Shown: positions 12,946-63,573 of the stretch, piece by piece
Layout of the letters: each line of letters begins with the position of its first letter
Numbering within the stretch: position 1 is the first letter of the stretch
Assembly: GCA_002269645.1 (NCBI GenBank)
Contig: NIVC01001946.1
Span: 62,001 to 126,000 of the forward strand
DNA length: 64,000 bases
Origin: Macrostomum lignano
Taxonomy: Eukaryota
Direction of reading: 5' to 3'
Notes under the pieces: generated by a model
Told to the model about the DNA's origin: nothing
The model's database searches: none
The model's input: only the letters and a program-made list of their open reading frames with translations
Program-made: the position numbers and the translations under genes

Positions 12946-14198
12946 TATATCGCAATTTATGTATACTTTTATATTGCATTGTGCATTCGAATTGGACTTT
13001 AAAATGTTGCAGTTAAGTGATTTTAAACAACATACGCAATTTAGCAAAGAAGAACACAATTAAGCGGTCATCTAAGGATTTACATGTGAGATTCAACCAT
13101 GAAAAACTAGCTACTCCACTCGTATATATAGAAAGTAAAAGATTTTTGAGTACCAAACTTCAAATGGCCTAAGCTATTCTAGGGGTTTTTCAGCCTTGGC
13201 TAACTCCTGTTTACCTCCGAGAGCTAGGAGAGAATGTCGTGACTTGAAAAAAACATTCCTTTGAAGTGTCACAGAGTGCTGTTAAACCACAAAAAGCTAC
13301 TTAGAATGGCTACAGAGATTTATATTCTAATGCCGCGTTTGTTGCCCGATTTTCTAAAGCTCTCCAGCGTGCCATGCTGCTACAGTTATAGCAAAATTCC
13401 TCAATGGAAAGTAAATGCATTGTGTCGGAAAATACTAATTGAAGCATGTGGATTGAATTGCTACTTATAGTAGTAAATATGCTTGTAGGGGCTTTTATTC
13501 TACCTGATTTCAACACCAATCAGAGGGTCAATTTCAAAGGACCGAAATTTCATAAGACCGCATTTCAAATCGTAGAAAACTTAATATAACAAGGACCATG
13601 TAGAATTTTCGGCATTGTGAAACTTCTGTCTTATGAACCCCCCCCCCAATCAGTATTCTGATGTCTGTTAAAAAGTGTCAAGTTTGCTCGATCATTAGTT
13701 TCCACCATATCGATTATATAGTTTCCTTCATCCATGGATTGCTCCATTATAGAGATCTGACCATCAGTGCAGAAGATGGTTCACAATTCAGAGATAAAAG
13801 TGTACAGACTATTGCAATTAAAAAAATATTCTCGAAATTTCTAGTCTACAGAACGGTCTGTGGAACGAACTGTATTTGGAAGTAAATTGCACGCAAAAAA
13901 GTTTACTTTTCGTTTGCTTTGGTTAATTAGCCAATTTTGTACACTAGTTAAGCAGCTTCTGTACGAGTACATACATGTTACGTAGGAGAAATACTCGTAA
14001 ATCTGAACGCTCTAGGTGATATAAATTTATCGGTGCAGAGAGGAGTGTTCTAGTGGCGACGCAGAAAGCCTAAGTATTGCCATTTGCATAATTTCTTACA
14101 CTAGATAAAGCAAAGATCGAAACTACGCAATTTCATACTGGTATAAGTTGACATCACTACTTAGTATCTACAAAGTATTCACTCTGAGGCGCTGAAGC

Positions 14199-22060: not shown

Positions 22061-22439
22061 CGCCCTGCGACACCCTGTGACATTGAACGCGTATTTTAAT
22101 ATTGTTGAACCCGCCTCTCCGCTCTCCTCCCTAACTCCTGGAATCTGTCTTTTTGTTCCCTATTTTGTTTTCTTTTAAAGCCGCAAGCAAAAATCTTTTC
22201 AAACCATTAAAATCGTGGATGCAAATTGCGCAGAAAATCACCTGCCTAAATGTTGGATTGCTGTATAGAAAATATCTAGAACATCTCCGGTTCGGTTAGT
22301 GCGTCACTTATAAAAATGTTTTTTTTGTCGGAACACCTGCGTACAATTACTTGTGTATAATTGATCCAAAATGCTCGAGGCTATAAATCCCCCTGGTTTT
22401 AAGATAGAAATGAAAATTTTCTAACACAAAGCTTAAGAC

Positions 22440-26747: not shown

Positions 26748-33186
<6,439 letters not shown>

Positions 33187-44426: not shown

Positions 44427-47400
44427 CAGGGGCGCGTCGAGAGGTTTCAGGATGGGGGGGCCCAGTTGGGGCCCAGTAAAAACTGAAAGGGCAACATCTC
44501 GAATAGAGTGTACATTTTTTAATTACAAGTATTGTAAGAGAAAATTTTCATCGAAAAGCAAAAATGACATCCAAAAATACCTCGCAATGAATGATTGCAA
44601 TTGTTTAGTTAATTTAAGAAAAACGAACATTCTAAATCACTAAATGGTTCTTGTTTTTTTTGCCCAAGAAAATGCTTTTGAATATTTTTTGCTTTGTCAA
44701 GTTGTTTAGTTTTGTAATTGGAAGACTTTAAACACAAATGCATGCATGTTACTTTTTCCAGCAGATTCTCGTCAAAAAACTCCGTTGGTTACTCCTTTGG
44801 AAGATTTCATGCATTTACTACACATTGAACCTTCATTATTATAAAAAATAAGAAATGCCGACGTTTAAAATTTTTATGCATTCTTCAATGACCTCATTAA
44901 TAATAGATATATACCCAGCAAGACAAAATTTTCCACACTTCTCTTGACAGAATTTCATCTCTCTGTTTGAGTGACAAACAAGGACAACTTGATAACAGTT
45001 ATCAAGTTGTCCTTGGTGACAAATTGGAGACTCTGGGCCACAGACATTTATTCTGATACATGTATGCGCATTGAGATACATCGAGATAGAGTCTGATAGA
45101 CCAGACCATAGAAATCTAAGCTAGATATCTATGGATAGACAGTTTTTGTAATTGTAATTTGTCTATGGTCGAACTGTTGGATTAATTCGCCACTCAACTG
45201 AGAGACAAAATTCTCCTAAGAAACGGATGGGGACACTTGTCTTGCTGAGTATGCATGCATGGTGCATAAAGTACATTTGATGATCGATGATAGGTTTAGT
45301 GAAAACACGTCAGCGTAGAATGAACTTGAATATGAATTTACAGTAACACTTTACCACCCACTTCATCACAATCACCATACCGGTACATAACATAACAACA
45401 GACCTTAACATGAATGCATGCATATATACATATTATTTAATATATATACATAATTTAAAACAAATCAGCCAATTCGATCAATGTGTATACACACGTACAT
45501 TCGTATACCTTTGAACGATACATGAAACAGGTAGCAATTAGTAGCAATGACAATGAAGTGAAAAATGACAAGTAATGTAACGTACATAAATGAAGTATGT
45601 ACAGAATAAAAACGTAAAAGCAACATACATATACTGTAATACTATACATGTACATACATTAGTCAAGTGGCCGTAGCAAATGTAAATTGTCTTAGCGAGC
45701 AAAATAAGTCATAAAATTATGTTAGACTTATTCGCCTATTAGAATGGGCAGACGCAAATTCATCAACAAAACAGTCAAGATCAATTATTGATGCTCGCTC
45801 GTTTTCAATCGACAAAAGAGCCAGATTTGAAAGTCAAGAAGATGACATTCGACTTCTCAAGTACGTCTTGATCAGGCGCATTTTCGAAAAACTGCGCTCC
45901 GCTGATGCTGTTGTTACTGGAATAGTCAAGCATATGATGAGAAGCTTGTACAACTCAGGGAAAACCTCTCTGAATGGGTGCAACATCTCAGCAAATGCTT
46001 TTAAATCAGTCAAGCTGCCATTGCCCTTTCTCTCAATCAGACGCTTTACTTGAATTACCTCAAGTTTCAGGAACTCTTGGTCACATTTGAATAGGCCTCC
46101 TAAATCCTCCAGCTGTGAAGCGTCCAAAAAACAGTCCGAGTTTGGCTTTAAAGAACCAATTCCCTTAAAGAGAACAGCTGTTTCATGGTCAAATCTTTGT
46201 CGCATTTCCGACAATAGGCAGTCGATCACCGATAGATATACATTAATTCGAAATCCGTTTGCTCCAGATTCAGAGTTGCGCTGAGCGACATGATCCCTTT
46301 CAAAAGTTACAAACTGATCGAAGCGCTTATTTGGGCGTTTTGTTTGTCTGTTTGGTTCTGGCTCAGGTATATTCCACTCATTACCTAACTGCTGGGAGTC
46401 CAGAAATACTTTCTCTAAGAATTCGTTGCTGTCGCGCAAAGTTTGGAATTTGGTGATTGTTGACTGTGCCAAATCAACAGCAGAAGCAAGGTCTAAATCT
46501 TTTTGTTGAAGGAAATCCGATAGTGCCTTTGTGCGAGTCAGAATTTCGCACATAAGAACTAGCCTTAGTACGAAGCTTCGGGTCAACTGAGCTAAAATTC
46601 CAGTGGCTTCAACAACACGATCTCCGGAGTCCTGCTCCTTAATTTCTTTTAAAACGGAGAGAATCGCGCCAATACGATTAAGAATATTGTTGCACGCCTT
46701 CTCTCTGCAGGCCCATCTCGTGTCTGAGAGGCGCTGAAGCTCTAAGGCTGGCTTTCCAAGATAGAGTTTCTTCTGGTGGTCAATAAACTGAGGATGAACA
46801 ACTAAGTTTGACATAAAACAGTAGAGCTTCTGCACAAGAGAAAAGAAGTCCTCAATCTAGGGCACTGATTTGCAAGCATCAACAAGACATAGATTCAGGC
46901 AGTGTGCATAGCAGTGTATGTAAATTGCAAGTTCCGACTTGTCTCAAATCAGCTTTTGGAGCCCATTATGAACTCCGCTCATCACTGAGGCTCCATCATA
47001 GCCTTGGCCAACTAGAAATCGGTGTCTAGGCCATATTTCTGAAGGCTTTCTACTAGTGAGTTAGCAAGTGATTGGGCAGATAGTCCTGAAGCAGGTTTAA
47101 ATTCCATAAAGACTTCCTGCACTCCTTCTGAATGCTTGTAGAAACAAATGATTAAGGAGATCATTTCAACCTTAGATATATCCTTGGCCTCATCTACAAT
47201 CACAGAAAAATATTTGGCTTCTTGGATGTCGTTTACAACAACATCACGGACCATGTCTGCCAGAATGTTAATAACTTCATTTTGAATTGTGTCACTCGTG
47301 TACTTTGCATTCTTCTTCTGTTCAGATATCTTCTTCTTTATTATTTCGTCATGTCTGCCAATCAGCTTCAATAATACTTTGAAGTTTCCAGGATTTACTT

Positions 47401-49008
47401 GCTCATCATTTTCGCGATGCCCCCTTTGGGCGATGTTTTGAGTTGCTGTAAGAAGTAATACTTCTCCTACACACTTAATGAAGTGCCTGTTCTCAGCTAC
47501 CTTAGCTTTGTACGTAGCATCAAGCTGTTTCAATACAGTTCCTTCAGTGTCTTTCATTACTTTGTAGTCACACCATGCTTGCATTGCTAAACTGTGGCAA
47601 TGAGAGCGGGCATGCTTTTTAAAGCCTGCATCCTGACACTGAGCATTTTTCCAGTTGCGGAATCCCTGAGTAGTAAAAGATGGCTCTTCTTGCATAGATG
47701 GAGGCGCGAAGTGGCGGCAGGGAAAGCAAAAAGCAGAATCCTTCATTTGCAAATACTCAAGCCACTTGTAAGTCTCAAACCACGAGAATTGAAATGAACG
47801 GGACTTTTGCTTTGCCTTATCCGTTCCTGTGGAGGATTTTTACAAATTTTTACATTGATTTTTACAAACTTTTAAAAAATACGTCTATATCAGTATAGCT
47901 AGCCTTAGCCACTAGCACTAGCCACTAGTAACCATTAGCACAAACAGTATTATATAAATAACTGTCGACTTACTGCCTGAAGTTCCAACTGATTTTGGGT
48001 AGTTCCGCAAAAATGGCTGACAGGGTGGATCGTCCTTATTCTGGGAAATATCACATAGGGCCTTCGAAGAAGGTTGCTCAATTGTTCTACTGTCTGAGGC
48101 TAACTCTGTGGCAGTGGCAGCGGTAGCTGTCTCAACTAGAACAGGAGTGCCAGGAAAATTTGTTTCAGAGCCAGTCAGTTGAGCATCCTGTTCAGACTCC
48201 TGATCCGCAATCGTAGAGATGGCACTTGGTTGATCCTTATGCCTTTTCGCCTGGCTATCAGTTTTTTCGCCTGGACCTTCATCATCTTCTCGCGGGTCTG
48301 AGCTAGGTCTTTTTAAAAAACTTCGAATATCAGGCCTCTGCATTGTTGGCCAGGCTTCTTTAATTCAATTCTTAAAAATACATTTCCGTTTTTTTGAACC
48401 TTAAGACTTAAGAGAGCAGTAGCTAAAGTGTGACTTAAATCTTAAGGGGCAGAGGGGCAATGCTCTGTAGTCTTTTACACACTGCCTGAATGTATGATGG
48501 TTTAACTCTTTGTCCCTGTCCAAATGTACATTTATCAGCACGCTTCTCCCTTCCCTTTCTGTCTGTCCTATCCCTCCTTTCCCTGTCCCAGTGCAAGTGT
48601 TAGGCTATACGCGTGGGGGAGGGGGTTGGGGGGTTGGAAGGATACAGCCATATAGACTGAACAGTTAGATAAAAACAATAAAGTCTGAGAGGCAATGCAC
48701 TTTATAATTAAAGTTAGACAAAACCAAAAACACCGACAGATACTATAAAAACAAACGAAACGAAATTTGCCATACTATCAGATCAGAAAGTAAAGAATAA
48801 TGTACCCATGTAAAGTTATGCTCGTGTAAAAACTTCTAGTATAGTAGTATTGTTTCTAAAATTAAAATTATAAAAAGGTTTTTCAATTTTTTTTGAAAAA
48901 ATTCGACGTTCAGAAGTCAGAACTGAAAGTGGGGGGGCCACAGGGGGGGCCTATGGCCTAACAAAGGGGGCCCAGGCCCTCCCTGGCCCCCCCTTGGACG
49001 CGCCACTG
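44427..49008 (-). mobile_element. Full-length hAT DNA transposon, 4582 bp
   Basis: 8-bp TSD AAGTAAAT at 44419-44426 and 49009-49016; TIRs CAGGGGCGCGTC / CAGTGGCGCGTC; G/C-run subterminal regions; internal transposase. Confidence 0.95.
45717..48343 (-). pseudogene. Disrupted hAT transposase (ZMYM1-like: TTF zinc finger, DUF4371 region, hAT dimerisation domain)
   Basis: Exon 1 48343..47974, phase-1 intron, exon 2 from 47826. Motifs: FSWF..YKWLEY..AFCFPCRHF, FSVIVDEAKDIS, GQGYDGASVMSG, YIHCYAHCLNL, RLSDTRW, PVTTASAERSFSKMRLIKTYLRSRM. Lesions: a frameshift near 47015 and premature stops near 46940, 46857 and 45834. Confidence 0.92.
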
Positions 49009-49863
49009 AAGTAAATGAGAAAATTTTGATACTATATTAGTATATGAAAGCTAAACAATTGTAGATTGTTTTTTTTCATGATAGACACAAAAATTGATTG
49101 AAATTAAAAAAGCAAAAAAACAAAATTTTCATGTTTGATATACATTGGTACTCTAAAATACTAAATTGTTTTGGTTTTTTTATAATTTAAAAATAATTTC
49201 CCAAGTTTTTGTAAAAACCCAAGATTATTCAAGACAAGAAAAAAAGATGTTATAAATGTTAATGTGTTATGGTTCTATCCTATAAAATGATCTCATTGCT
49301 ATCACTAGGCCCTAAGTTGATATAGAGGACAGGGGTTACTTCTGCCTTCTAGAGTAATCCTATTGTTATTAATGCTAAAGTTGTTATTTATCTTAATATT
49401 TATGTACTTCTTTCATGTATTTATCCTTTGGTAGCATATATATTTATCTATTGGTAGCATGTGTTTATCTACTAGTAGCATATATAAATATTTATTGGCC
49501 TGAATAATCCTATGGTACTGTCTACTCTATTCTTATATATATCCCCTTATTCTATTCCTCTAAAGAGTTTTCTTTCAGTCTTGGGCATTCCTGGGATTAG
49601 AGGATCATGGCTTACACTTTGCTAAGTTTACTGCCCTAGGGCAAAGTTTTTAGACTATATATCTAGATTAGTCTACCCTTTTGGTAGATGTTCTGCCTTC
49701 TAAGGCAAGTTGCTAGATTCTAAAGAATGGATCAAATCCCTTTTTGGTGCTCTTTTTAGGTTGCTATCTACTATTCAAAAGAAGTAACATAAGAGTGAAT
49801 ACTAGCCCTGAGGCTAATTGAATTTTGTCTCTAAAAAGAACAAACAACTGGAGAAATTATTAG

Positions 49864-51387
49864 TGATGTGGCCGCAGCCTTCTGCTGCAAGCATAGGGCC
49901 GCAGTCACATCTTAGGCACTGCTGTCCGCTGCTAGTATCTGGAATAGGAATTTTCTGCTGCCTCCATGCACTCTAAGCAGCCTTCCTTGGCGCTCAGAAG
50001 TTGCACAATATGGCGCAATCTAGGAAGGAAATTAGGAAGTTTTGCCTAGCCTAGGGTTAGTTAGTGGAAGCCGCCAAATTTGGCGCTTGCCTGTACTGTT
50101 GTTGCCTGGCCTGCCGCGTACGATCGCTCAGTGTACGCAAGTCTAGTTAGCCGCACTCCTCCCCCGTGCGCTCTCTGGACCCTTCCCCTTTTCTGCTCTC
50201 TCGTTCCTCCTGCGTCCGAGCCTCTCCCCATGCGTCATTCTATTTTTAGACTGAGGGTTTCGCGGACCCCGTGTCCCGAGCTGAACCCTCCCTCACGTGC
50301 AGCCTTGTGCGCACAAGCCCAAATTTGGCATGCTATTGTCACTAGTGGCTTGAGGCGACTGTCGGCGCTTCGTTCAAGCTACTTTCTCCCCCATGTTTAA
50401 TCAATATCTGTTGTGCATCATTATCCGCACTTTTCGGGCTGCAGTTCCATGGTCAAGCCACGGAATGCCCAAACGCTCCACCCTCCGCGTTCTATATTAA
50501 CGAATGCAGGCCCGCTTGTCTGAATTTTTCCTCAGAACCGTTTTGACCGCTGGTCAATCTCGTAGAGAACTATCTCCGAGAAAGCGCTCTAGCGCCGGTT
50601 AACAGCGAAGCAAAGCTCCTGAGCAGGTCTTGGTAGAGCTTTAAGCATCGCTAAGCAGCTGCAAGCTCCTGAGCAGGTCTTGGTAGAGCATTGCAGCGCT
50701 CAAGCAGAAAGCACGCTCCTGAGCAGGTCTTGGTAGAGCATTGCTAGTGCTATAGCTCTGGTTTTCCAGCCTACCCTATTGGCAGGAAATCAGTTGGCTG
50801 AGGCCATTCTGCTAGTGTCAATTCGCGACACAGGCGCGAATAAGAGTGAGAGTGAGTGTGCAGTCGCAGCACTCGTGCGCGATCCTAAGAACTAGCTGTT
50901 AGTTTATAGGCCTAGAGTCTATTGCTGCTTCAGGCGCATAGACCTATTCCTCGCCGCCCATCTGCGCGAGACATAGCTATTAGGTTAGTAGGAGTTAGGG
51001 GTCCTCTGAGAGCTAAACTCAGACACGCTCAAGCGCGGACATTGTCAGTGCCAGGACTGCGCCGCTCAGGCCATTTGCTACCATTGAGTCCTGTCACTTG
51101 GACATTGAAATATCTGAGACTAGTTGTTCTAGCGTTATTTATTTGCGTGGAGCCCAAACAGACCCCTTCATTGCGGATCCTACGGTTCCCACGCTGGTGG
51201 CAGCACTACCCTTAATTTTAGATTTCCCCAGTCTCAACCCCCACAAGCGTGCTTGCTAAGGTTGCCTCGGCCAATAGCAGTCCGCCTCACCCTAGCAGCC
51301 AGATACCGAGACACAACACTGGTGGCAGCGGTGGGATACCAAGATTTACAGACCCGAGCCAAGGCAATCAGAAGCAAGGGCACTTTA
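49864..51387 (+). repeat. 5' terminal repeat (canonical LTR TG...CA 49864-51318 plus 69-bp extension)
   Basis: Begins TGATGTGG; the canonical end GACACAACA is its imperfect inverted match; duplication with the 3' copy continues to CACTTTA. Confidence 0.95.
51320..51337 (+). promoter_or_regulatory. Primer-binding site 1, 18-nt complement of the tRNA-Leu 3' end
   Basis: TGGTGGCAGCGGTGGGAT is the exact reverse complement of the 3' 18 nt of animal tRNA-Leu(AAG/UAG) (AUCCCACCGCUGCCACCA). It lies 1 nt after CA. Confidence 0.9.
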
Positions 51388-51388
51388 C

Positions 51389-51410
51389 TGGTGGAGCAGC
51401 GGTTGGGATT
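51389..51410 (+). promoter_or_regulatory. Primer-binding site 2 (degenerate)
   Basis: TGGTGGAGCAGCGGTTGGGATT equals PBS1 plus two small insertions; it lies 1 nt after the end of the duplicated region. Confidence 0.7.
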
Positions 51411-51618
51411 ACGATACCGACTCCAACTCCGGACCAAATAGTTAGGAAGTTTAGTAGTGAAGCAGCTGTTGGGAATACCATACCAATAAGCGCTCAAGAG
51501 GGAATAGCATCCTATCAGTTAGTAGATAGATTCCCTAGTATATCAGCTATTAGTATTAGATCGCGCGAAGCTCGCTGCAAATTAGAATCAGTTGAATTCT
51601 CGCCTTATAAAAGTGAGA

Positions 51619-52869
51619 ATGTCATTGAACCGATCCCGTTCGTTAGAGAGTGGTTCAGAGCAAATTCCGAATGAGAACAGGGGCGCAGCCGCCGCTGCAG
51701 CCGCATCTCCATGCGCTAGCCCTGATGATGGCATATTTGGAGCAGACTCAGACTTCATTAGAGGTCTTGGCGCAGGCGTAAATGCTAACCTGCTGCAAAA
51801 CCTGCTCGTAAATATGAACAGGCAGATGAATCTGCAGACTAAAAAGCAGATTAAAATCGCCAAGTACAAGCCATCAATGGACATTCGAATTTGGCTCGAA
51901 ATGTTTGAGATGAAGTGTGAGAGAGAAGAAGTCTATGACATGAGAGAGAGGAAAGCTTTAATCATGGATAGCCTAGATATGGAGACTGCCCTCGCCGCAG
52001 TTCTGCATATGAAGCTACCACATGATCTTCCTTATCACAGCTTTAGGGAGCAGCTCATTGAGCGCTTCGAGAAGCTTGGCGGCCCAAACGCCTATAGGGA
52101 AGAGTTTCGCTCTCGATTGCAGCGAAAGAATGAGTCAGTAGATGACTACGCTGAAACGCTTCAGGCACTCGGAGAACAAGCATACCCGAACCTGAGAGCT
52201 GACCAAATTGAGATAGAGCTCGTAGATGCTTTCACCCGCGGCGTACGCGTAAGCCCTGACACTCGCGAAAAGCTTCTACTGATGCAACCGGCTACGATTA
52301 TGGAGGCAAAGCGTGCGCTCAAGCGCATAGAAGCTGCGCGAGAGTTCGCCAATCGAACTCGTGACGCGCCCGTCAGGATGATGCAAGATGACTCGCGATC
52401 ATCAGAGCATTCCATCCCCAAAGGCCTCCAAGAGTTGATGACAAGGCAGACAGCCGCGCTGGAACGCCAGCAGCAGGCTACGCAGCAGTTGCTTGAGCTT
52501 GTAAGCTCGCAAAGCGCGTGTCCGCCAAGACTGCAGCAGCCGAGAGATGCGCATCACCAGCAGTCCCGCTGGTCGAGCAACGTCGAGATTCCGAGATACC
52601 GACAGCGTGCAACATGCTATAGCTGTGGCCAGGAAGGCCATCTTCTCGGACAATGTCAACGCTACAAGGAGCAGCAAGCGCTCGGAAAGCGCTATTCGTG
52701 TGAACGCTGCGGAGAGTCAGGACATGCTGTCCAAGACTGTCACGCGCGTGGTGTTGATCGACAGTACAAGAAGAAAGTTTCGGGAAACGGCGCCGCAGGC
52801 GGTTGCGACGGCAACAACCCCTGCGCCAACAGCCAAGAGCCCGCAGCCAAGAACACCCGGCGACAGTAA
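51619..52869 (+). CDS. gag: Gag with two CCHC zinc knuckles
   Basis: First ATG at 51619; capsid-like region (LQRKNESVDDYAETLQAL); CYSCGQEGHLLGQC and CERCGESGHAVQDC. Confidence 0.93.
   Translation: MSLNRSRSLESGSEQIPNENRGAAAAAAASPCASPDDGIFGADSDFIRGLGAGVNANLLQNLLVNMNRQMNLQTKKQIKIAKYKPSMDIRIWLEMFEMKCEREEVYDMRERKALIMDSLDMETALAAVLHMKLPHDLPYHSFREQLIERFEKLGGPNAYREEFRSRLQRKNESVDDYAETLQALGEQAYPNLRADQIEIELVDAFTRGVRVSPDTREKLLLMQPATIMEAKRALKRIEAAREFANRTRDAPVRMMQDDSRSSEHSIPKGLQELMTRQTAALERQQQATQQLLELVSSQSACPPRLQQPRDAHHQQSRWSSNVEIPRYRQRATCYSCGQEGHLLGQCQRYKEQQALGKRYSCERCGESGHAVQDCHARGVDRQYKKKVSGNGAAGGCDGNNPCANSQEPAAKNTRRQ
52782..52824 (+). promoter_or_regulatory. -1 programmed ribosomal frameshift signal
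   Basis: G GGA AAC heptamer in gag frame (52782-52788), 6-nt spacer, then stem GCAGG-C-GGTTG pairing with CAACC-CCTGC. Pol is in the -1 frame and open from the heptamer. Confidence 0.85.
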
Positions 52870-55800
52870 GCTTCGCTGGAGGAGAGGAGGCACGTCCCTC
52901 AGGCCAACAGGACTTGAGTGAGATCGGTGCCAATTTTGTACAAAATCTATGCGATGCCGACCCGTATGTTACGGCACATATATCCCGATGCAGTGTCGCC
53001 TTCCTGTTAGATACCGGTAGCAGACGGAATCTAATTGGCAGCGATACTTGGTCTGCGATTAAGGCGCAGCACCCAAATTGCGTAGTTTCACCTATTTATT
53101 CAGACGCGATCCAAATGTATGATGGATCTGCACTAGCGCTGCTAGGCAAAGTATTTATTCCGATCGAATTTGGCGACTTTAGCGCTGAAACTGAATTTTA
53201 CATCGCTAAAGGCGCCCATGAAAATATTTTGGGGATTAACTTTATGAGAGAAAACTGCCTTGAGCTAAATTTTCAGCAAGGTATGTTGACTTTCAAATCG
53301 TTAACCCGTGTGCCAGTGAGATTTACTAGACGCGAAGCTGCAGCCAGTAGGTTGTATACAGCCGACAGGTATACAATTCCACCGCGCAGCACACGCGTAG
53401 TTGAAGTGAAAGTGGCGAAAGGGCGCCAAGATTTGAATGGCACGCCCCTGATTTTCGAGCCACTGAAATCCGGTAATAGAGTAGGCAGCCTTACTTACAC
53501 TATGGCGCCAGCACTCTTAACCGTGAATGAAGGCCACAGCTATTTAGAAATAATCAATAATAGTTCGGCTGAAATTACAATTAGAAACAATGTACTGCTT
53601 GGAGTAGCTAGTCCGCTTAAATGGCAGGATTTAGCGTACTTCGAAGAGCCTTCAGAGGCGCGAGTCAGACACTTGCAGCCGGATGATGCCCAAGCAGGAA
53701 AGAAGAGCTGGATAGATCAGATAGAAATTAGTGACCAGCTCTCAGCAGATCAGAAGAAATTAGTTAGAGAACTGCTGCTCCAAAAGAGCGCAGCTTTCGC
53801 CAAAGACGAGCTAGACCATGGGCTCACGCATCTAGTGACTCATGAGATGATCATGACTGATAACACTCCAGTCAGAATTCCGCCGCGCAGAGTGCCGCCG
53901 CACTTGCAGGAAAAGCTCGATGGCGTAATAGATGAGATGTTGGCAAAGAACATCATCAGGCCAGCATACTCTAGTTACAACTCGCCAGTGCTGTTAGTAC
54001 CTAAAAAGGATGGAACAGTTAGATTAGTGTTAGATTATCGCGAGTTGAATAAGAAATGTTTAAGGCACGTCTATCCTCTGCCTAACATTCAAGATACCTT
54101 TGCTTGCTTAAAGGGCTCGAATTTCTATTCTTGCCTAGACTTAGCGCAAGGTTTCTTTCAAATTCCGCTTAGACAAGAAGATCAGCATAGAACAGCCTTT
54201 TCAATTATTAATCGTGGCCAATTTTGCTTTAATGTGCTACCAATGGGCTTGACTGATTCGCCCGGCTCATTCCAAAGGACCATTAATTTGCTCCTAGAAG
54301 GATTGAAGCCCCACATTGCGCTCGGGTATATGGATGACATTCTAGTTCATTCAGTAACCTTTGAGCAGCATCTTGCGCACTTAGAAACAGTGCTGCAGCG
54401 CGTAATTGACGCGAAACTGAAGCTGAAGGCGAAGAAATGTTCGCTGTTCTCAGCTGAGTTGGCTTACTTAGGACATAAGCTAACTCCTGAAGGTGTCAAG
54501 ACGGATGAGGCGAAGCTCGCCGCTATCCGCGATTGGCCAGTGCCGCGCACAGCCTCGCAGCTGCGCAGTTTTCTAGGCCTGGCCCAGTACTATAAGAAGT
54601 ACATTAAGGACTACTCTAGTATAGCATCGCCATTGCACGCTTTAACGCGCAAAACTATCACTAGCCTGTCAAAATTATGGACTGATGAGCATCAACAAGC
54701 TTTTCAGGCCCTGAAGGACAAATTATGTTCTTCAGAAGTTTTAGCTTATCCTGAATTTACCAGTGATCCTAAGGTGTCATTCATCTTGGACACAGATGCT
54801 AGTGATATTGGAATTGGCGCATGCTTAGGCCAGATTCAGTCTGATGGCGAAGAGCATCCTATTGCTTACTTCAGCCGCAAGTTGTCAGCTGCAGAAATGC
54901 GCTACACGACAACTAAGAAAGAGTTGTTAGCGATTGTCGATTCTCTCCGACATTTCCGCTACTATCTATTAGGGAAGAAGTTCAAGATCAGGACAGACCA
55001 TTCCGCGCTGTGCTGGCTACTTCGCCAAACTGAAGCCACCGGAATTCTAGGTCGTTGGGTGCAGAGGTTGAGTGAGTTTGATTTCGAGTTGTCCCATAGA
55101 GCTGGGAAACTGCACGTCAACGCTGACACGTTGTCCAGGAAGCCGGAGACCCCGGCCCAATGTTCAACTAGCGCCTTGAATAACCCATGCGAGATTCGAG
55201 AGGCAACTGTCTCAGGCCCCCGACTGACCGCATTGCTGGAGGAGAGTGCGCCAGCGAAAGATGCTGCTGTAAAGCGCATCAAGAGTGCCTGCGAGAAATC
55301 AGACTGGGAAAGAAGCGAGGAGGCCACTGTGAATTCAGCCCACCCGCCAGAAATCCCTCAACACTCAGGATGTGATGAAGGCGCGTTAAGGCCCGACTGC
55401 TCTCCCATGAGCCCGCCTAATGCAACCGATAGTCTAACTAAGACTCCATGGCTCGATTGCTTTCCCATAAGCCTGCCAGGTGTCGCCAAACCAAGTGCGC
55501 AGAACTCGAATTGCTCCCCGCTGAGCCGTTCTGCTGCCATGCCGACTATCTCGAAGGTCAAATCGAAGCGATCACTGACCCCGATGTCGAGCAATCCTGC
55601 TGAGATGGGCACTGAAGCGTCGATACGATGCGGATTCCAATCCCGCCTTCGACATGCCAATCAGCAGTGGATGAAGAATTCTGCCAGAGCCAGAAAGGCG
55701 CCTCAGAATTGGCTGCCAGAAGCTGAGTGCTCTGATGATGAAGATGATGCAACAGGTTCGGACTGCACGACAGAATCTGAGACCAATCGACAGCCTGATT

Positions 55801-57755
55801 CGCCCGATGCATTGCCGAAGCCTCAGTTTGATTTCGACTCCCACCAGTCACCGTCGCTGCCAAGATGTCGATTTCTGCTGTCTGAAGCCCTAGAAGCACC
55901 GATTACGAGACAGGAGCTGCTTGAAGCGCAGAAGAGAGACCCTGTACTCGCGAAAATCGCTGAGTTGAAGGCGCAGAGTGCGCCCAAACCGTCTTTTGAC
56001 GAGAGACTAAGCATGAGCAAGGAAATGAGAAACCTGCTCGGGTACTACGAGACCCTATGCTTAGACAATGATGGCATTCTAATGATAGATTTTGATGATA
56101 ATCGACCCATTAGATTTGTCTTGCCAAAGGAGTTAGACGCTGCTGTAATGCGCGCACTGCATGACTCCCCGCTAAGCGGCCATTTAGGCCAGAAAAAGAC
56201 TCTGCAGAGAGTCCAGCAGTTATTCTGGAGACCCGGAATTCACACTGTGGTCGATCGTTATATCGCCCAGTGTAGAGCTTGCTTAGAGAGCAAAGCCAGG
56301 CGCAAAGTGCACTTGCCGCCTCAGAAATTCCCGGTCGGAGATGTGTTAGACCGCGTACACTTGGATATCATGGGCCCAATCAATCAGCCTAGTGCTGCAG
56401 GCCATAGATATGTCCTAACCTTGTGTGACGCGACGTCGAAGTATCCGTGGGCCTATGCTCTGAGAAATCAGAAGGCCAAGACAATTATTAAAGTGATTCA
56501 GGAACAGTTCATTCCAATTTACGGTGTGCCAGCCCAGTTCCATTCTGATCAAGGAACCAATTTTACGGGCGCCGCCTTTAATAATTTTTGCAAATTATAT
56601 GGGATAAGACACACAGTAACTTGTCCGTATAATCCTGCATCTAATGGACTTGTTGAGAACCTGAATCGGAACATTAAGTCTGTGCTGACATGTCTGTTAG
56701 AGACCAAGCACAAAGATTGGGCACACTATCTGCCAGCTTGCTTAATAGCGCTGCGCACGGCTGTTCACTCAGTGACAGGATACAGCCCGCATTTTCTGAT
56801 GTTTGGCCGCACATTCAATTTGCCAATTGAAAATGAATTGCGCCACTCACCTGATTATCAGAATTTGCCAGATTATGTGCGCCAATTTGAAAGTCGACTG
56901 AGTGAGGCGACCGCCCTAGCAAAAGAGCGAATTCGCGCTCAGCAGGATTTCCGCGTAGATCACTTTGCCGGAAAACCGCAAGTAGATCCGCTGCAGCCAG
57001 GACAATTAGTGTTCTTGGCGAATCCAGTGCTAGAGGCCGGTGAAGCGCCGAAATTCCATAGACCGCGGAAAGCCGTCTATGAGGTGATTGAGCAAAAGGG
57101 CGAGCTGGTCTACAAGGTCCGTCGCCAAGGCGAGAAGCGCCGTGCTCGAAAAGAGGTGCTTGTAGTGCACCGAAAGAATCTGCTCCCCGTGCCAACTGCC
57201 GACTATCTCCCACAGGTCGCAGAAGCACAGCACCCGATGCACCGACAGCGTTGTCATCCGGCGCCACAGGCTGCTACCGAAGCGCCAGGCTGCCACGCTG
57301 AGTTCTGCACCGAAGATTCCGACGAGGACGGAGACGAGAGCATTGTCGACGTAAATTGGGCGCACCCAGCTGCAGCCGCCGCTGCGCTGAGGTCGACGCG
57401 CTCGCCGCTGCAAGCGCGATCGCGAGGCGCCATCGCCGAAGTTGTCGACCAAGGAGCTGAAACGGAGAGAGGAGATTTTCCGCCCATTGAGGTTGCGCAG
57501 TTGCCGTCACGCAGCCCAAGCCCACGCGAATCTCCTATTCCCGCGCTCCCATCCCCCATCGCACCTGAGCAACAACTAGGAGAAATTTCGACTATAGATA
57601 GGCAGGCAACTAGGACTAGGGACGTCGATCTAGCGACACTAAACCGCCCAGAGCGATTGCGCAGGGAACCTGATAGGTTACAGGTCAACCCTAGCCGCAA
57701 GACATATGCGTCTCGCCTGGCCAGATTAATTAACCGAATATTTCGCCGGAAATAA
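52803..57755 (+). CDS. pol: Pol polyprotein: aspartic protease, reverse transcriptase, RNase H, integrase
   Basis: FLLDTGS; YRELNK, LDLAQGFFQI, LPMGL, YMDDILV; ILDTDASDIGIG, TDHSAL; HHCC zinc finger (HDSPLSGHLG..CRAC), VHLDIMGP, HSDQG, NGLVEN; GPY/F-like region. No internal stops. Confidence 0.98.
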   Translation: MRRQQPLRQQPRARSQEHPATVSFAGGEEARPSGQQDLSEIGANFVQNLCDADPYVTAHISRCSVAFLLDTGSRRNLIGSDTWSAIKAQHPNCVVSPIYSDAIQMYDGSALALLGKVFIPIEFGDFSAETEFYIAKGAHENILGINFMRENCLELNFQQGMLTFKSLTRVPVRFTRREAAASRLYTADRYTIPPRSTRVVEVKVAKGRQDLNGTPLIFEPLKSGNRVGSLTYTMAPALLTVNEGHSYLEIINNSSAEITIRNNVLLGVASPLKWQDLAYFEEPSEARVRHLQPDDAQAGKKSWIDQIEISDQLSADQKKLVRELLLQKSAAFAKDELDHGLTHLVTHEMIMTDNTPVRIPPRRVPPHLQEKLDGVIDEMLAKNIIRPAYSSYNSPVLLVPKKDGTVRLVLDYRELNKKCLRHVYPLPNIQDTFACLKGSNFYSCLDLAQGFFQIPLRQEDQHRTAFSIINRGQFCFNVLPMGLTDSPGSFQRTINLLLEGLKPHIALGYMDDILVHSVTFEQHLAHLETVLQRVIDAKLKLKAKKCSLFSAELAYLGHKLTPEGVKTDEAKLAAIRDWPVPRTASQLRSFLGLAQYYKKYIKDYSSIASPLHALTRKTITSLSKLWTDEHQQAFQALKDKLCSSEVLAYPEFTSDPKVSFILDTDASDIGIGACLGQIQSDGEEHPIAYFSRKLSAAEMRYTTTKKELLAIVDSLRHFRYYLLGKKFKIRTDHSALCWLLRQTEATGILGRWVQRLSEFDFELSHRAGKLHVNADTLSRKPETPAQCSTSALNNPCEIREATVSGPRLTALLEESAPAKDAAVKRIKSACEKSDWERSEEATVNSAHPPEIPQHSGCDEGALRPDCSPMSPPNATDSLTKTPWLDCFPISLPGVAKPSAQNSNCSPLSRSAAMPTISKVKSKRSLTPMSSNPAEMGTEASIRCGFQSRLRHANQQWMKNSARARKAPQNWLPEAECSDDEDDATGSDCTTESETNRQPDSPDALPKPQFDFDSHQSPSLPRCRFLLSEALEAPITRQELLEAQKRDPVLAKIAELKAQSAPKPSFDERLSMSKEMRNLLGYYETLCLDNDGILMIDFDDNRPIRFVLPKELDAAVMRALHDSPLSGHLGQKKTLQRVQQLFWRPGIHTVVDRYIAQCRACLESKARRKVHLPPQKFPVGDVLDRVHLDIMGPINQPSAAGHRYVLTLCDATSKYPWAYALRNQKAKTIIKVIQEQFIPIYGVPAQFHSDQGTNFTGAAFNNFCKLYGIRHTVTCPYNPASNGLVENLNRNIKSVLTCLLETKHKDWAHYLPACLIALRTAVHSVTGYSPHFLMFGRTFNLPIENELRHSPDYQNLPDYVRQFESRLSEATALAKERIRAQQDFRVDHFAGKPQVDPLQPGQLVFLANPVLEAGEAPKFHRPRKAVYEVIEQKGELVYKVRRQGEKRRARKEVLVVHRKNLLPVPTADYLPQVAEAQHPMHRQRCHPAPQAATEAPGCHAEFCTEDSDEDGDESIVDVNWAHPAAAAAALRSTRSPLQARSRGAIAEVVDQGAETERGDFPPIEVAQLPSRSPSPRESPIPALPSPIAPEQQLGEISTIDRQATRTRDVDLATLNRPERLRREPDRLQVNPSRKTYASRLARLINRIFRRK

Positions 57756-57774
57756 TCGCCCTACAGCGACAATT

Positions 57775-58209
57775 ATGTCAGATGAAGAAAATTTTAGGCC
57801 GGAGCGACGGGCTGAAAGCTCGCGCCCGATTACCCCCGACGTAGCCCATCAGGCGCGTCTGCCAACAGAAGAGAGCGACCCGCAGGGGCGCCCAGCCCGA
57901 CCTCGGAGGCGTGGAAAGAGAGCCGGACGGTTCCGCGGAGAAGAGGGACGTCAACTGTTCATCCGGCTACGCCGAGCGGCCGCTGCGGTGGCCTTCGCTA
58001 CGCCTCTTTCCGCGAGGAACGTCCGACCTCCTGGTCCTCGCCCGGAGTCTGGCCGAAATGCGCCGCCACCTTCGCCGGTGTCACGCGCCACATCGACTGA
58101 AGATCTGGCCGCCTGGTCGAGGCAGCGCCAGGCCACGGACCGCCAAATAACTTGTTCACGTGCCCCCTTTTTTCTGACATATTATTTTGCATGTACCATC
58201 TTTTTTTAA
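57775..58209 (+). CDS. Small Arg/Pro-rich third ORF of the Gypsy element, 144 aa
   Basis: ATG 19 nt after the pol stop; stop-free up to ~80 nt before the PPT; function unknown. Confidence 0.45.
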   Translation: MSDEENFRPERRAESSRPITPDVAHQARLPTEESDPQGRPARPRRRGKRAGRFRGEEGRQLFIRLRRAAAAVAFATPLSARNVRPPGPRPESGRNAPPPSPVSRATSTEDLAAWSRQRQATDRQITCSRAPFFLTYYFACTIFF

Positions 58210-58280
58210 TTAAAAAGTTTTTACTCACCGTTCGTTTTAAATAAACGCTGAAGCCGTCAGCTTCTTCCGGCTCATCTTTT

Positions 58281-58293
58281 AGCTGGAGGAGAG
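58281..58293 (+). promoter_or_regulatory. Polypurine tract
   Basis: AGCTGGAGGAGAG immediately before the 3' LTR TG. Confidence 0.75.
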
Positions 58294-59817
58294 TGATGTG
58301 GCCGCAGCCTTCTGCTGCAAGCATAGGGCCGCAGTCACATCTTAGGCACTGCTGTCCGCTGCTAGTATCTGGAATAGGAATTTTCTGCTGCCTCCATGCA
58401 CTCTAAGCAGCCTTCCTTGGCGCTCAGAAGTTGCACAATATGGCGCAATCTAGGAAGGAAATTAGGAAGTTTTGCCTAGCCTAGGGTTAGTTAGTGGAAG
58501 CCGCCAAATTTGGCGCTTGCCTGTACTGTTGTTGCCTGGCCTGCCGCGTACGATCGCTCAGTGTACGCAAGTCTAGTTAGCCGCACTCCTCCCCCGTGCG
58601 CTCTCTGGACCCTTCCCCTTTTCTGCTCTCTCGTTCCTCCTGCGTCCGAGCCTCTCCCCATGCGTCATTCTATTTTTAGACTGAGGGTTTCGCGGACCCC
58701 GTGTCCCGAGCTGAACCCTCCCTCACGTGCAGCCTTGTGCGCACAAGCCCAAATTTGGCATGCTATTGTCACTAGTGGCTTGAGGCGACTGTCGGCGCTT
58801 CGTTCAAGCTACTTTCTCCCCCATGTTTAATCAATATCTGTTGTGCATCATTATCCGCACTTTTCGGGCTGCAGTTCCATGGTCAAGCCACGGAATGCCC
58901 AAACGCTCCACCCTCCGCGTTCTATATTAACGAATGCAGGCCCGCTTGTCTGAATTTTTCCTCAGAACCGTTTTGACCGCTGGTCAATCTCGTAGAGAAC
59001 TATCTCCGAGAAAGCGCTCTAGCGCCGGTTAACAGCGAAGCAAAGCTCCTGAGCAGGTCTTGGTAGAGCTTTAAGCATCGCTAAGCAGCTGCAAGCTCCT
59101 GAGCAGGTCTTGGTAGAGCATTGCAGCGCTCAAGCAGAAAGCACGCTCCTGAGCAGGTCTTGGTAGAGCATTGCTAGTGCTATAGCTCTGGTTTTCCAGC
59201 CTACCCTATTGGCAGGAAATCAGTTGGCTGAGGCCATTCTGCTAGTGTCAATTCGCGACACAGGCGCGAATAAGAGTGAGAGTGAGTGTGCAGTCGCAGC
59301 ACTCGTGCGCGATCCTAAGAACTAGCTGTTAGTTTATAGGCCTAGAGTCTATTGCTGCTTCAGGCGCATAGACCTATTCCTCGCCGCCCATCTGCGCGAG
59401 ACATAGCTATTAGGTTAGTAGGAGTTAGGGGTCCTCTGAGAGCTAAACTCAGACACGCTCAAGCGCGGACATTGTCAGTGCCAGGACTGCGCCGCTCAGG
59501 CCATTTGCTACCATTGAGTCCTGTCACTTGGACATTGAAATATCTGAGACTAGTTGTTCTAGCGTTATTTATTTGCGTGGAGCCCAAACAGACCCCTTCA
59601 TTGCGGATCCTACGGTTCCCACGCTGGTGGCAGCACTACCCTTAATTTTAGATTTCCCCAGTCTCAACCCCCACAAGCGTGCTTGCTAAGGTTGCCTCGG
59701 CCAATAGCAGTCCGCCTCACCCTAGCAGCCAGATACCGAGACACAACACTGGTGGCAGCGGTGGGATACCAAGATTTACAGACCCGAGCCAAGGCAATCA
59801 GAAGCAAGGGCACTTTA
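58294..59817 (+). repeat. 3' terminal repeat (LTR to 59748, then PBS1 copy 59750-59767 and 50 bp of leader)
   Basis: Same sequence and length as the 5' repeat wherever I compared them; the ORF track gives identical peptides at offset 8430. Confidence 0.95.
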
Positions 59818-60900
59818 TTAGCATGCTTGAAAGAACTGCAATTTACAAGAATAGTTATCATTTAACAGTTTATTTGGTTAGGCTTTCAGTTGGCTTCTAT
59901 TTTATAATAAACTTTTTGCTTACTTTTTTAATCATAACAACATATAAAATATACAAAATATATAAAATATTTCAAATATGTGTATGATATAACAAAATAA
60001 TGCAATTTTGAAATTATTTTTTAAAGAAATTTGATCTACTAAAAGTGAAGCCTTTTACAGACATTAGAGTCTTAAAACACTTTTTACAAATTCCTAATGC
60101 ATTTATTAGGGCCTAATAGTAGAATATAAGATATTCCAATACTAATTAATAGTACAGATACTTTTTGCTTTACAATTATTGACTATAACTGATAATTTAG
60201 CAATAAAGAATGACCTTAATATTAAATATATATTTTTTATACTTTAGTTTCTAAAGATATAATATTATTAGCTCATATGAATGTAACTATATAAAATGAA
60301 ATTTTCAATGGTAAAATAATTTTTTATAAATAATAAGATAGTTGATAAAAAATCAATATGCATTATTTTTTAAATAGAAAAATTGTCTTTTTAATATAAC
60401 TTGTATTTTCTTTGTCTTTTGTATAAATTTTACAATTAAAAAAAAGCTAAGAGTGTGCTTGTAAATATAAAAAGTTGTTTATAAATGACTCTTTTTTTAA
60501 TAAAAATAGCATTTATTTTACTAAAATAGTATAAATACCTATTTTACTAAATTTGTTATAGGATTATAGGAGCCATAGTGATTTTATGATCACAGAAACA
60601 AATAAATTAAAAGAAAAAAGGCATTTAATGGTTGAGGCAAGAAAGAGAAAAAACTTGAATTACAAGCAGAGAAAAGCAATATTGCAAAAAATCTCGACAG
60701 ATGGAAGTATATTGCAGTTTTATGAAGAACTATGTTGCACCAGCCAGGTAAAATTCAGAAAGTTGAACATGCATGACTACAATTCAAGCTGGTTAACTTG
60801 AAATTTAATTTTTCCTAAAACTGGAAATGATCAATTCTCTTTTCATGCAAGAATAAAACAACAATTTTTGCTACAATAATTAGTTTGAACAATAAATACC

Positions 60901-63573
60901 ATGGCTGACAAAGAGAAAGCTGACAAGAAGAAGCAAAAGAAGGAGGCTGAAAAAGCAGCCAAATTGGCCAAGTTTCAAGCCAAGAAGCAGTTAGAGGAGC
61001 AGCAGAAAGCCGCTGCAGCAGCTGCTGATGGACAAAAGCAATCAAAAAAGAAGAAAGCTGGCAAGCCAGAGAAGCCAACTGGTCCAGCTGAGTACAAGTG
61101 GGAGCACGAGCCCGGGCAGCGTAAGAACACAGCCTGTCCCCTACCAGAGGCCTATGAGCCTCGCTATGTTGAATCTGCCTGGTACGAATGGTGGGAATCT
61201 GAAGGCTTCTTCAAGCCCGAACATCAACAGCCAGATTTTACTAAACCAAATCCCAGAGGTATATTTATGATGGTGATTCCGCCGCCGAATGTCACAGCTG
61301 GCCTGCATATTGGCCACGCGTTGACTAGCGCTATTGAGGACACCCTAACTAGGTGGCACCGGATGCGGGGTGAGACCACCCTGTGGAATCCCGGATGCGA
61401 TCACGCTGGCATTGCTACGCAGGTTTGTGTTGGCTGGTGCCGTTTCAGATCCCACAGTTTCATCAACACTTAAAATCTCATCAATCCCACAATCTCGGCA
61501 CTCCCACAATCTGAGCACTCTCATTAGCTTGACACTCCCACAACCTGAGCACTCTCACAATCTCGGCACTCCCACAATAGTCGAACTCTAAAATTCTACA
61601 CATCCACAATCTCGGCCCTACCATAATCTCAGCACTCCCACGATCTTAGAACTCTCACAATCTTAGAACTCTCACAATCTGAGCATTCCACAATCTTAAA
61701 ACTCTCACAATCTGAGCACTCCCACAATCTTAAAACTCTCAAAATCTGAGCACTCCACAATCTTAAAACTTTCACAATCTGAGCATTCCCACAATCTTAA
61801 AACTCTCAAAATCTGAGCACTCCACAATCTCGGCCCTCCCATTTCTCACAATCTGAGCATTCCCACAATCTTAAAACTCACAATCTGAGCACTCCACAAT
61901 CTCGGCCCTCCCATTATCTTAGAACTTCATAATCTCAGCCCTCCCACAATCTGAGCACTCTCACAATCTGAGCGTTCCCACAATCTTAGAACTCTCAAAA
62001 TCCGAGCACTGCCACAATATCGGCAAGTCAATAATCTAAGTAGTCTCAAAGTCTGAGCACTCTCACAATATCCAACTGCCGCAGGTTGTAGTGGAAAAGA
62101 AGCTGATGCGAGAGCGCGGCCTGACCCGACACGACCTCGGCCGGGAAGCATTCGAACAAGAAATCTGGCGCTATCGCAACGAGAAAGGCGATCGAATCTA
62201 TTATCAATTGCGTCATCTCGGCTGCTCATGCGATTGGTCACGGGCTCGATTCACAATGGAACCAAAAATGAGTCGGGCCGTTATTGAAGCCTTCGTTCGC
62301 ATGCACGGCATGGGCCTGATGTACCGGGCCAACCGGCTGGTTAACTGGTCCTGCACCCTGCGCAGCGCCATCTCCGATATCGAAGTGGAAAAGAAGGAAC
62401 TGACTGGCAGGAAAGCGCTTCACGTGCCCGGCTACGAGCAGCCCATTGAGTTCGGCGTGCTCACCCATTTTGCCTATCCGTTAGCAGATTCGGATGAGAA
62501 GATTGTCGTGGCTACTACTCGGCCGGAAACTATGCTGGGCGACACTGCTGTGGCTGTGCACCCGGAAGATCCTAGGTAGGTTGCGGTTATTAATTACTTG
62601 TAGAATTGTGTTGATTGTGTTTGAAATTTTGCCGTATCGAATGTATCGAAAATAGAGTTTGCACAGGTTATGATGTACTAGAAAGCGTCATTTTAAATTA
62701 GCTTGCCGTTATGTATCAAAAAATCATTATCAGAGTAGATCATTGGTAAAATTGCCCGATATGTATCGAAAATCATTGCATCAGCTGATCTAGATCGATT
62801 GTCGATTGGCCGATATGAATAGAAAATCACTTTATCAGCGTGTTACATTATATAGTACAGTTAGCCGATATGTATCGAAAATTAATTTATAGGCGTATTG
62901 GATTACATCGTAAAATCGGCCGATATGTATCGAAAATCACTTTATCAATGTTTTATATTAGATTGTAAAATCGGCCGATATGTATCAAAAATCACTTTAT
63001 CAGCGTTTTATGTTAGATTATAAAATCGGCCGATATGTATCGAAAATCACTTTATCAGCGTATTGGATTACAGTAAAATCGGCCGATATGTATCGAAAAT
63101 CACTTTATCAGCGTATTGGATTACATTATGTAATGTATTCGGCCGATATGTATCGATAATAGCAATTAAATTATTCGAAACCAACTCTCCGCTCCCCCTA
63201 GATACAAGCACATGCACGACCGTCGTATCGTTCATCCGTTCTTCCCCGACCGGGAGATGCGCGTCGTTGCTGACAGCTTTGTCGAGCGCGAGTTCGGCAC
63301 AGGCGCGGTGAAAATCACCCCGGCTCACGACGCCAACGATTTTGAATGCGGCATTCGTAACAATCTCGCCTTTATCACAGTCATCGGCGAGGACGGTCGC
63401 ATCGCCGACAATTGCGGCGAGTTCTCCGGTTTGCCCCGGTTCGATGCTCGCCAACGCGTTGTGGACGCTTTGAAAGCCAAGGGTCTCTGGATTGGAGAGC
63501 AGGACAATCCTATGGTTGTGCCAATTTGTAGTCGCAGCAAAGACGTTATTGAACCGCTAATTAAGCCGCAATG
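60901..63573 (+). CDS. VARS1: Valyl-tRNA synthetase, 5' part; exons 60901..61422, 62085..62575, 63202..~63573; continues beyond the window
   Basis: Lys-rich eukaryotic N-terminal extension; [17 protein letters not shown] (HIGH motif), [11 protein letters not shown]|[47 protein letters not shown]|[27 protein letters not shown] boundaries with consistent phases. Confidence 0.97.
61470..62065. repeat. Degenerate ~18-bp intronic repeat (CTCACAATCTGAGCACTC core)
   Basis: Fills intron 1 of ValRS. Confidence 0.88.
62620..63170. repeat. Degenerate ~55-bp intronic repeat (GCCGATATGTATCGAAAATCAC core)
   Basis: Fills intron 2 of ValRS. Confidence 0.88.

Follow-up and report, generated by a model that had tools for sequence, protein, structure and literature searches.

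An intact Ty3/gypsy element with extended repeats

The window analysed here, a 64,000-nucleotide (nt) stretch of contig NIVC01001946.1, contains an intact Ty3/gypsy retrotransposon of 9,954 bp (49864-59817; Table 1) whose long terminal repeats (LTRs) both carry a perfect primer-binding site (PBS) for tRNA-Leu. The last replication cycle of this element was probably primed at a second, downstream site (PBS2), and this produced its present ends. In a self-comparison the two repeats align at an offset of 8430 and are identical over 1524 of 1524 bp, including 69 bp that lie beyond an inner, conventional LTR boundary; judged from these identical repeats, the element is very young. Both copies start with TGATGTGG and end with GGGCACTTTA at 51387 and 59817. 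The termini are TG...TA (TA at 51386-51387 and 59816-59817), as the original prediction had it, and not TG...CA; a CA is found at 51317-51318.

The inner boundary is formed by ...GACACAACA, which ends at 51318 and is followed by a one-base spacer (C, 51319) and the 18-mer TGGTGGCAGCGGTGGGAT (PBS1). Its earlier reading as an LTR end, a 1-nt spacer and a perfect tRNA-Leu PBS holds to the base: a published 3' fragment of tRNA-Leu(AAG/TAG), ATCCCACCGCTGCCACCA (PMC10591036), has the 18-mer as its exact reverse complement, and a scan of the window with up to three mismatches found it only at 51320-51337 and 59750-59767 (0.04 occurrences expected). The identity of the tRNA was taken from a published mammalian tRNA fragment. 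The match stops after 18 bases, where the tRNA complement continues with TCGA… (22-nt fragment; PMC12025293) and the element with ACCAAG, as is typical of a true PBS. The repeat goes on for 50 further bases in both copies, without a mismatch, up to 51387 and 59817. In the 5' copy this point is followed by a C spacer and the degenerate PBS2. Both observations agree with what had been predicted.

In reverse transcription, minus-strand DNA begins at the base adjoining the primer, and this 5' end becomes the right end of the linear cDNA; sequence found in the U5 of both LTRs is that lying upstream of the primer in the template. The extra 69 bases match the leader of the element and not the tRNA, and would therefore have been copied from RNA by a primer at or after 51388. 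Moreover, the repeat ends exactly one base before TGGTGG, in the same seven-base context (C+TGGTGG; here 51388-51394) that directly follows the inner ACA boundary at 51318, for which a randomly placed end has a chance of 4^-7. The 4-mer TTAG stands flush outside both repeats, with a chance of 1/256 at 59817; as had been claimed, it follows the CACTTTA point and not the CA, and the inner end at 59748 shows no duplication (59749-59752 read CTGG). A randomly placed end, whether from a tandem deletion, a repair tract or a mis-join, would need both of these exact coincidences. Two marks of downstream initiation are present, namely an upstream PBS with the inter-PBS sequence in both LTRs (51320-51387 and 59750-59817), and a second site capable of binding the same primer after the extended repeat at the same spacing (PBS2).

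A DNA-level event after a normal insertion, either the remnant of a deleted tandem copy or break repair or gene conversion from the junction of 5' LTR and leader, is in our view quite unlikely. Head-to-tail arrays that share LTRs, and in which PBS and leader follow an internal LTR, do exist, or are at least assembled, in the relatives from Macrostomum lignano treated below (L006; L001, with a period of 7898). However, the tract would need to stop exactly at the base preceding CTGGTGG and, in addition, to leave a perfect duplication of 4 bp immediately outside the new end. The junction between CTTTA and TTAG makes no use of microhomology. A truncated tandem copy had been named at the outset as one case that would speak against priming at PBS2, and the 3' flank is not element-derived, with no further element sequence downstream. 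As an observation in its own right, the arrays span 7738-24077 in L001 and 1-9044 in L006, with a period of 7898 bp and 99.8% identity, and represent either real tandem elements or an assembly effect.

Several other Ty3/gypsy features are in place. Besides long terminal repeats and a short target-site duplication, the element has the pol order protease, reverse transcriptase (RT), RNase H and integrase, with Pfam domains RVT_1 at residues 399-560, RNase H at 626-759, Integrase_H2C2 at 1108-1166 and rve at 1185-1278. An LLDTGS motif lies near Pol residue 70, the protease itself having no Pfam match at E <= 0.001. The pol frame, shifted by -1 against gag, stays open over 1650 codons. In gag, the zf-CCHC model scores 20.4 bits, below its cut-off of 20.8, and two CX2CX4HX4C motifs are readable in the translation. 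A polypurine tract (PPT) adjoins the 3' LTR; the AG that ends it also precedes the 5' repeat, as the end of the flanking TTAG. A tRNA-complementary PBS is expected after the 5' LTR and outside the repeat; here a perfect one lies inside both repeats, and falls outside only if the LTR end is taken as 51318. The third open reading frame (ORF) is rich in Arg, Pro and Ala and has no Pfam match. Inside each LTR, GCTCCTGAGCAGGTCTTGGTAGAGC occurs three times about 50 bp apart (50615-50742 and 59045-59172), forming a short tandem repeat in U3/R that is possibly regulatory.

Table 1. Features of the element and its flanks (all on the + strand; positions are those of the window)
Feature	Position	Basis
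Left target-site duplication TTAG	49860-49863	same 4-mer at 59818-59821; 4-bp duplications of relatives
5' repeat as it stands (extended LTR, TG...TA), 1524 bp	49864-51387	100% identity to 58294-59817
Ancestral-type LTR, TGATGTGG...GACACAACA, 1455 bp	49864-51318	ACA + 1-nt spacer + perfect tRNA-Leu PBS; ACA + spacer + PBS in all relatives read
Older U5 relic, C + TGGTGGCAGC, then divergence	51194-51204	10-mer count; third-best tRNA-Leu duplex
Spacer C + PBS1, inside repeat	51319-51337	perfect 18-nt complement of tRNA-Leu(AAG/TAG) 3' end
Unit 1 tail, 50 nt, former leader in both repeats, ends GGGCACTTTA	51338-51387	repeat identity
Spacer C + PBS2 (TGGTGGAGCAGCGGTTGGGATT), degenerate, AG and T insertions	51388-51410	probable priming site of last cycle
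Third PBS-like motif, GTGAAGCAGCTGTTGGGAAT	51457-51476	unit 2 vs unit 3, z = 6.3; duplex -18.7
gag, counted from its first ATG in an ORF open from 51592, with two CX2CX4HX4C motifs	51619-52869	ORF and domain search
pol, intact: DTG protease motif, RT, RNase H, integrase	52803-57755	ORF and domain search
Third ORF, 144 aa, between pol and 3' LTR	57775-58209	no family match
Polypurine tract, GGAGGAGAG	58285-58293	M. lignano relative has AGAGGAGGAAAG at same place
3' repeat (extended LTR): inner ACA end 59748, PBS1 59750-59767, 50-nt tail	58294-59817	repeat identity
Right target-site duplication TTAG	59818-59821	flanking sequence

Primer-site motifs along the leader and U5

PBS2 reads TGGTGGAGCAGCGGTTGGGAT (51389-51409), or CTGGTGGAGCAGCGGTTGGGATT with its spacer and next base (51388-51410), and corresponds to a PBS1-like site with one insertion of AG and another of T. 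A shorter relic of 11 bases, C+TGGTGGCAGC, is found in U5 at 51194-51204 and 59624-59634, and the 10-mer TGGTGGCAGC occurs four times in the window against 0.09 expected. Together with a third motif in the leader, the four motifs are spaced 125, 69 and about 68-70 bases from start to start. The units are more alike than expected by chance (z = 5.8 for unit 1 vs unit 2 and z = 6.3 for unit 2 vs unit 3), and the signal sits in their PBS parts (z about 6); for the 50-nt tails the similarity is not significant (z about 1.3).

We folded the 18 nt at the 3' end of the tRNA against each 40-nt segment of the sense strand, in a scan that began with the 5' LTR and stopped short of the 3' LTR. PBS1 ranks first (predicted duplex energy of -39.8 kcal/mol) and PBS2 second (-29.3 kcal/mol), the latter with 18 of 18 nt paired, two bulges and both terminal 6-bp helices intact. 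The U5 relic ranks third (-21.0 kcal/mol) and the third motif fifth (-18.7 kcal/mol), while the background lies at -8.7 +/- 3.8 kcal/mol. Because it forms the second-best tRNA-Leu duplex in the element, PBS2 is predicted to be the obvious second choice for the same primer, and its intact end helices would permit initiation as well as the later plus-strand transfer. A canonical tRNA 3' end does not fit PBS2, which has 9 nt where the 7-nt acceptor strand belongs and hence is a decayed site and not the site of another tRNA. Its similarity to tRNA-Leu beyond 18 nt is marginal (p about 0.04) and is not relied on. A search for tRNA genes in the window and nine related loci gave none. Self-priming of the Tf1/sushi type was considered and rejected, as the LTR holds no complement of at least 9 nt to the PBS2 region. 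Terminal inverted repeats do not discriminate, since the match with the LTR start is 7 of 10 for either candidate end.

For the primer used, the outcome of the heteroduplex and the integrase step, we infer the following course. The element is a young Ty3/gypsy retrotransposon primed by tRNA-Leu, with a few PBS-like motifs arrayed in its leader at intervals of about 69 nt; PBS1, directly after the ...ACA end of the LTR, would be the motif normally used. In the cycle that yielded the present copy, minus-strand synthesis would have begun at PBS2, so that strong-stop DNA took in PBS1 and the next 50 nt, and after the first jump this longer "U5" would have been carried into both LTRs. The linear cDNA would then have ended in ...CTTTA-C in place of ...AACA-C; integrase may have trimmed it at the same distance from the tip, joining a TA end instead of a CA end, and the integration would have made the usual 4-bp duplication of the family. 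PBS2 would have retained the degenerate sequence of the template, as expected in about half of such events. As the M. lignano relatives show, the same process combined with duplication of an "LTR-end + PBS" cassette shifts the LTR edge along the array over time, leaving decaying PBS fossils in U5. The original proposal that priming at PBS2 placed PBS1 in both LTRs is favoured by the boundary, the flush duplication, the predicted pairing and the relatives described below.

Edges and primer-site arrays of related elements

We read eleven loci (L001-L011) from five related families. The best protein matches of the window element are from flatworms, namely M. lignano (45% Pol identity) and Dicrocoelium dendriticum (39%). 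The M. lignano family corresponds to the P0001 cluster (e.g. PAA58172.1; loci L001, L005-L009 and L011), and more distant elements are represented by L002 from D. dendriticum and by L003, L004 and L010 from ENA assemblies. An ...ACA end followed by a spacer and a tRNA-Leu PBS is present in 7/7 complete copies from four related families (L003, L004, L005, L007, L008, L009 and L010). Among the distant tRNA-Leu-primed elements, the edge reads …TTACA + G before TGGTGGCAGAGG… in L004 (duplication TGTT), …TTACA + G before TGGTGTCAGGAGTGGGAT in L003 (duplication GAAG), …TTACA + TAAT before TGGTGACAGAGGTGGGAT in L002 and …GTAACA + TAAG before TGGTGGCAGAGCGGTGCGAT in L010. These four share with the window element the domain order, the ...ACA + 1-4-nt spacer + tRNA-Leu-type PBS and, where readable, 4-bp duplications. 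However, each has a single PBS outside the repeat, no cassette array and an LTR that stops before the PBS. In the M. lignano family the edge reads …GGCCTGTCACA + GC + PBS, the PBS of L005, L006 and L009 is the same 18-mer as PBS1, and single copies carry 4-bp duplications in four cases out of four (ATCT, ACTG, ATTT and ATTT). A 4-bp duplication is the rule in this clade, and …ACA with a 1-4-nt spacer and a tRNA-Leu PBS its normal edge; 51318 is identified as the ancestral edge of the window element because its relatives end in this way.

The M. lignano family resembles the window element in further respects, including a PPT of the GGAGGA type and arrays of PBS-like motifs on both sides of the U5 edge. 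The non-coding leader motif AATAGTTAG(G)AAGTTTAG (17 nt) is found at 51438-51456 in the window and at 8426-8443 in L001, despite only 45% Pol identity, and because it is common to both, it suggests that the array region is homologous between the two. The units differ, being about 54 nt long and repeating the LTR-end motif CCTGTNACA in M. lignano, but about 69 nt long in the window, with only the PBS parts demonstrably alike. In addition, AGTTAG-like motifs recur in the LTRs of both elements.

One to three decayed cassettes of LTR end, spacer and PBS lie inside both LTRs of the M. lignano copies. For instance, the LTRs of L006, L001 and L011 contain an embedded copy of the edge, …GGCCTGTAACA + ACTT + TGGTGGCAGCTCGTAGGAT, with a half-relic, CGGTGGGATT, upstream of it; the look-up of L011 added only another ordinary 3' LTR. 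L005 has five cassettes, with PBS starts at 8233, 8287, 8339, 8418 and 8472 (spacing 54, 52, 79 and 54). The first three differ from the perfect site at 4, 3 and about 3 positions and are inside both LTRs, with counterparts in the 3' LTR beginning at 16288, 16342 and 16396. The fourth, a perfect site, stands at the LTR edge (8415), and the fifth lies in the leader, after a copy of the last 34 nt of U5 that includes CCTGTCACA + GC. L005, with one cassette in use and a spare downstream, seems to be in the state proposed for the parent of the window copy, and the embedded M. lignano relics appear to be what remains after the edge had moved on. The window copy would represent an intermediate moment, in which a perfect site has just been swallowed and the edge stands at a poorer one. 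Hence the decayed cassettes and the spare one lend support to the stepwise LTR extension that had been predicted.

Two PBS alleles are found in young M. lignano copies, TGGTGGCAGCGGTGGGAT (L005 8418, L006 1100 and L009 7738) and the 19-nt TGGTGGCAGCGATAAGGAT (L001 8472, L007 8487 and L008 8193), and L005 has both in tandem. The 19-nt allele may match another tRNA-Leu isodecoder, because it persists in several independent insertions.

The same relatives bear on whether the long repeat is simply the normal LTR of the family, with PBS2 (or its partner) as the regular site and PBS1 as a relic of an earlier extension in the lineage. We consider this unlikely. It is consistent with the outer end, whose inverted match with the LTR start is no worse than that of the inner end, with the evidence from M. 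lignano that embedded PBS relics can become fixed, and with our finding no short copy in the window or the collections searched. However, a regularly used PBS is rewritten from the tRNA, and PBS2 has kept its insertions and its non-canonical layout (9 vs 7 nt). PBS1 is still perfect at 18/18 positions, whereas the embedded relics in M. lignano and the one at 51195 have decayed, and the relatives all end in ...ACA, in every M. lignano copy read directly before the PBS in use. Unlike these M. lignano copies, the window copy combines a perfect PBS inside the repeat with a degenerate site at the edge and a TA terminus.

Weight of the evidence, heritability and surroundings

Several points speak against priming at PBS2 as the origin of the present ends. 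The exact repeat end is ambiguous by 3 nt owing to seven bases, TTATTAG, that are common to both flanks; the repeat may end anywhere in 59814-59817, and the duplication would measure from 7 down to 4 bp accordingly. Of these lengths, 4 bp is preferred because it is the one that the relatives make. PBS2 matches tRNA-Leu imperfectly, and in the retroviruses studied integrase makes poor use of TA termini. There is a single copy, so that the short form is deduced and not observed. No other copies beyond the LTRs of the element itself were found in the window, an exact look-up of Pol returned no record, and the homology search with Pol gave a best match of only 45% identity, with no closer family member in the protein collection. 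A 22-nt pattern spanning PBS1 and unit 1 had no match in metagenome or genome contig collections, and no paralogous empty site was found in the window. Finally, the 3' junction is known from assembled sequence alone, and identical 1.5-kb repeats are hard to assemble. An assembly artefact at this junction is nevertheless highly improbable, since a mis-join is not expected to stop at the boundary of a PBS or to give a duplication of 4 bp flush with the end. The element has about 50% G+C, and the DNA on either side of it is AT-rich and host-like, with about 36-38%.

Priming at PBS2 gives a plus strand with the perfect 18 nt of the tRNA and a minus strand with the template version, and about half of the products should be converted to a perfect site. 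PBS2 of the window copy retains its insertions and has not been overwritten by a tRNA copy; because it is unconverted, very few cycles at this site are suggested, possibly one, the likelihood of more falling as 0.5^n. The progeny should mostly prime at PBS1 and regain the short LTR, a reversibility that we infer only because PBS1 is still perfect and the stronger site. It is rather doubtful that the cassette array of this one flatworm-type gypsy clade is more than debris, that is, a maintained and heritable device letting the priming site shift. If it were, such shifts might help the element to evade host small RNAs that target the PBS (e.g. 3' tRNA fragments) or, alternatively, to switch between tRNA-Leu isodecoders, and the LTR boundary would float along the array with U5 lengthening and shortening between generations.

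The mechanism follows textbook reverse transcription and has an engineered precedent, and is already known in principle. Vectors of MLV and HIV-1 with two PBSs reportedly initiate at either or both sites (Voronin and Pathak 2004, J Virol 78:5402), and initiation at the downstream one is said there to leave the upstream PBS and the inter-PBS sequence in both LTRs. The logic and the product are the same as for the window copy. The vectors were designed with two perfect sites, whereas the second site here is natural and degenerate, in an invertebrate retrotransposon whose relatives indicate that fixation is possible. Retroviral 2-LTR circle junctions can also have PBS sequence attached to the U5 end, but such insertions copy the tRNA/PBS only and are dead-end products, unlike the window copy, in which 50 nt of leader matching the element follow the PBS and the whole is integrated with a duplication. 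LTR retrotransposons without TG...CA ends, for example those of the TG...TA class, are allowed by annotation tools; the window copy shares TG...TA with them, but the cause of its unusual end can be identified, and 69 nt further in there is a canonical CA end. Our literature search, of incomplete coverage, returned no natural retrotransposon whose LTRs contain a PBS or that has edge cassettes in an array, and neither PBS nor tRNA is mentioned in the M. lignano retrotransposon paper.

What is new is the natural occurrence, the integration through a TA end and the series of fossils that a related family has preserved. An LTR edge is taken to be a fixed landmark, and annotation tools, insertion ages and family definitions assume a PBS just outside the repeat. 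In the window copy, a natural element edge has moved by 69 nt in apparently a single replication cycle and has been integrated via a TA end, and the M. lignano relatives indicate that such moves can become fixed, leaving a readable trail of decaying primer sites in U5. This would offer a concrete route for the growth of U5 and leader sequences, and a natural test of how strictly integrase depends on the CA dinucleotide. M. lignano should be a workable system for studying the choice of primer site, because its LTR elements are heat-inducible (PMC12801592).

The window is rich in transposons. It contains a hAT transposase remnant (DUF4371 and hAT dimerisation domain) and two reverse-transcriptase fragments, at 45834-47752 (-), 12248-12979 (-) and 21303-22178 (+). 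The ORFs at 16990-17673 (-) and 6948-7649 (+) have a cyclic-nucleotide-binding domain and a fibronectin type II domain, respectively, and the former has no homologue at E <= 1e-5. The stretch 29857-32369 has a GC skew of -0.63 and long ORFs that overlap in several frames; it consists of C-rich repeats of low complexity and is not a gene. About 2 kb downstream of the element, positions 61438-61998 are occupied by a long array of 17-bp tandem repeats (CACAATCT[G/T]AGCACTC and variants).

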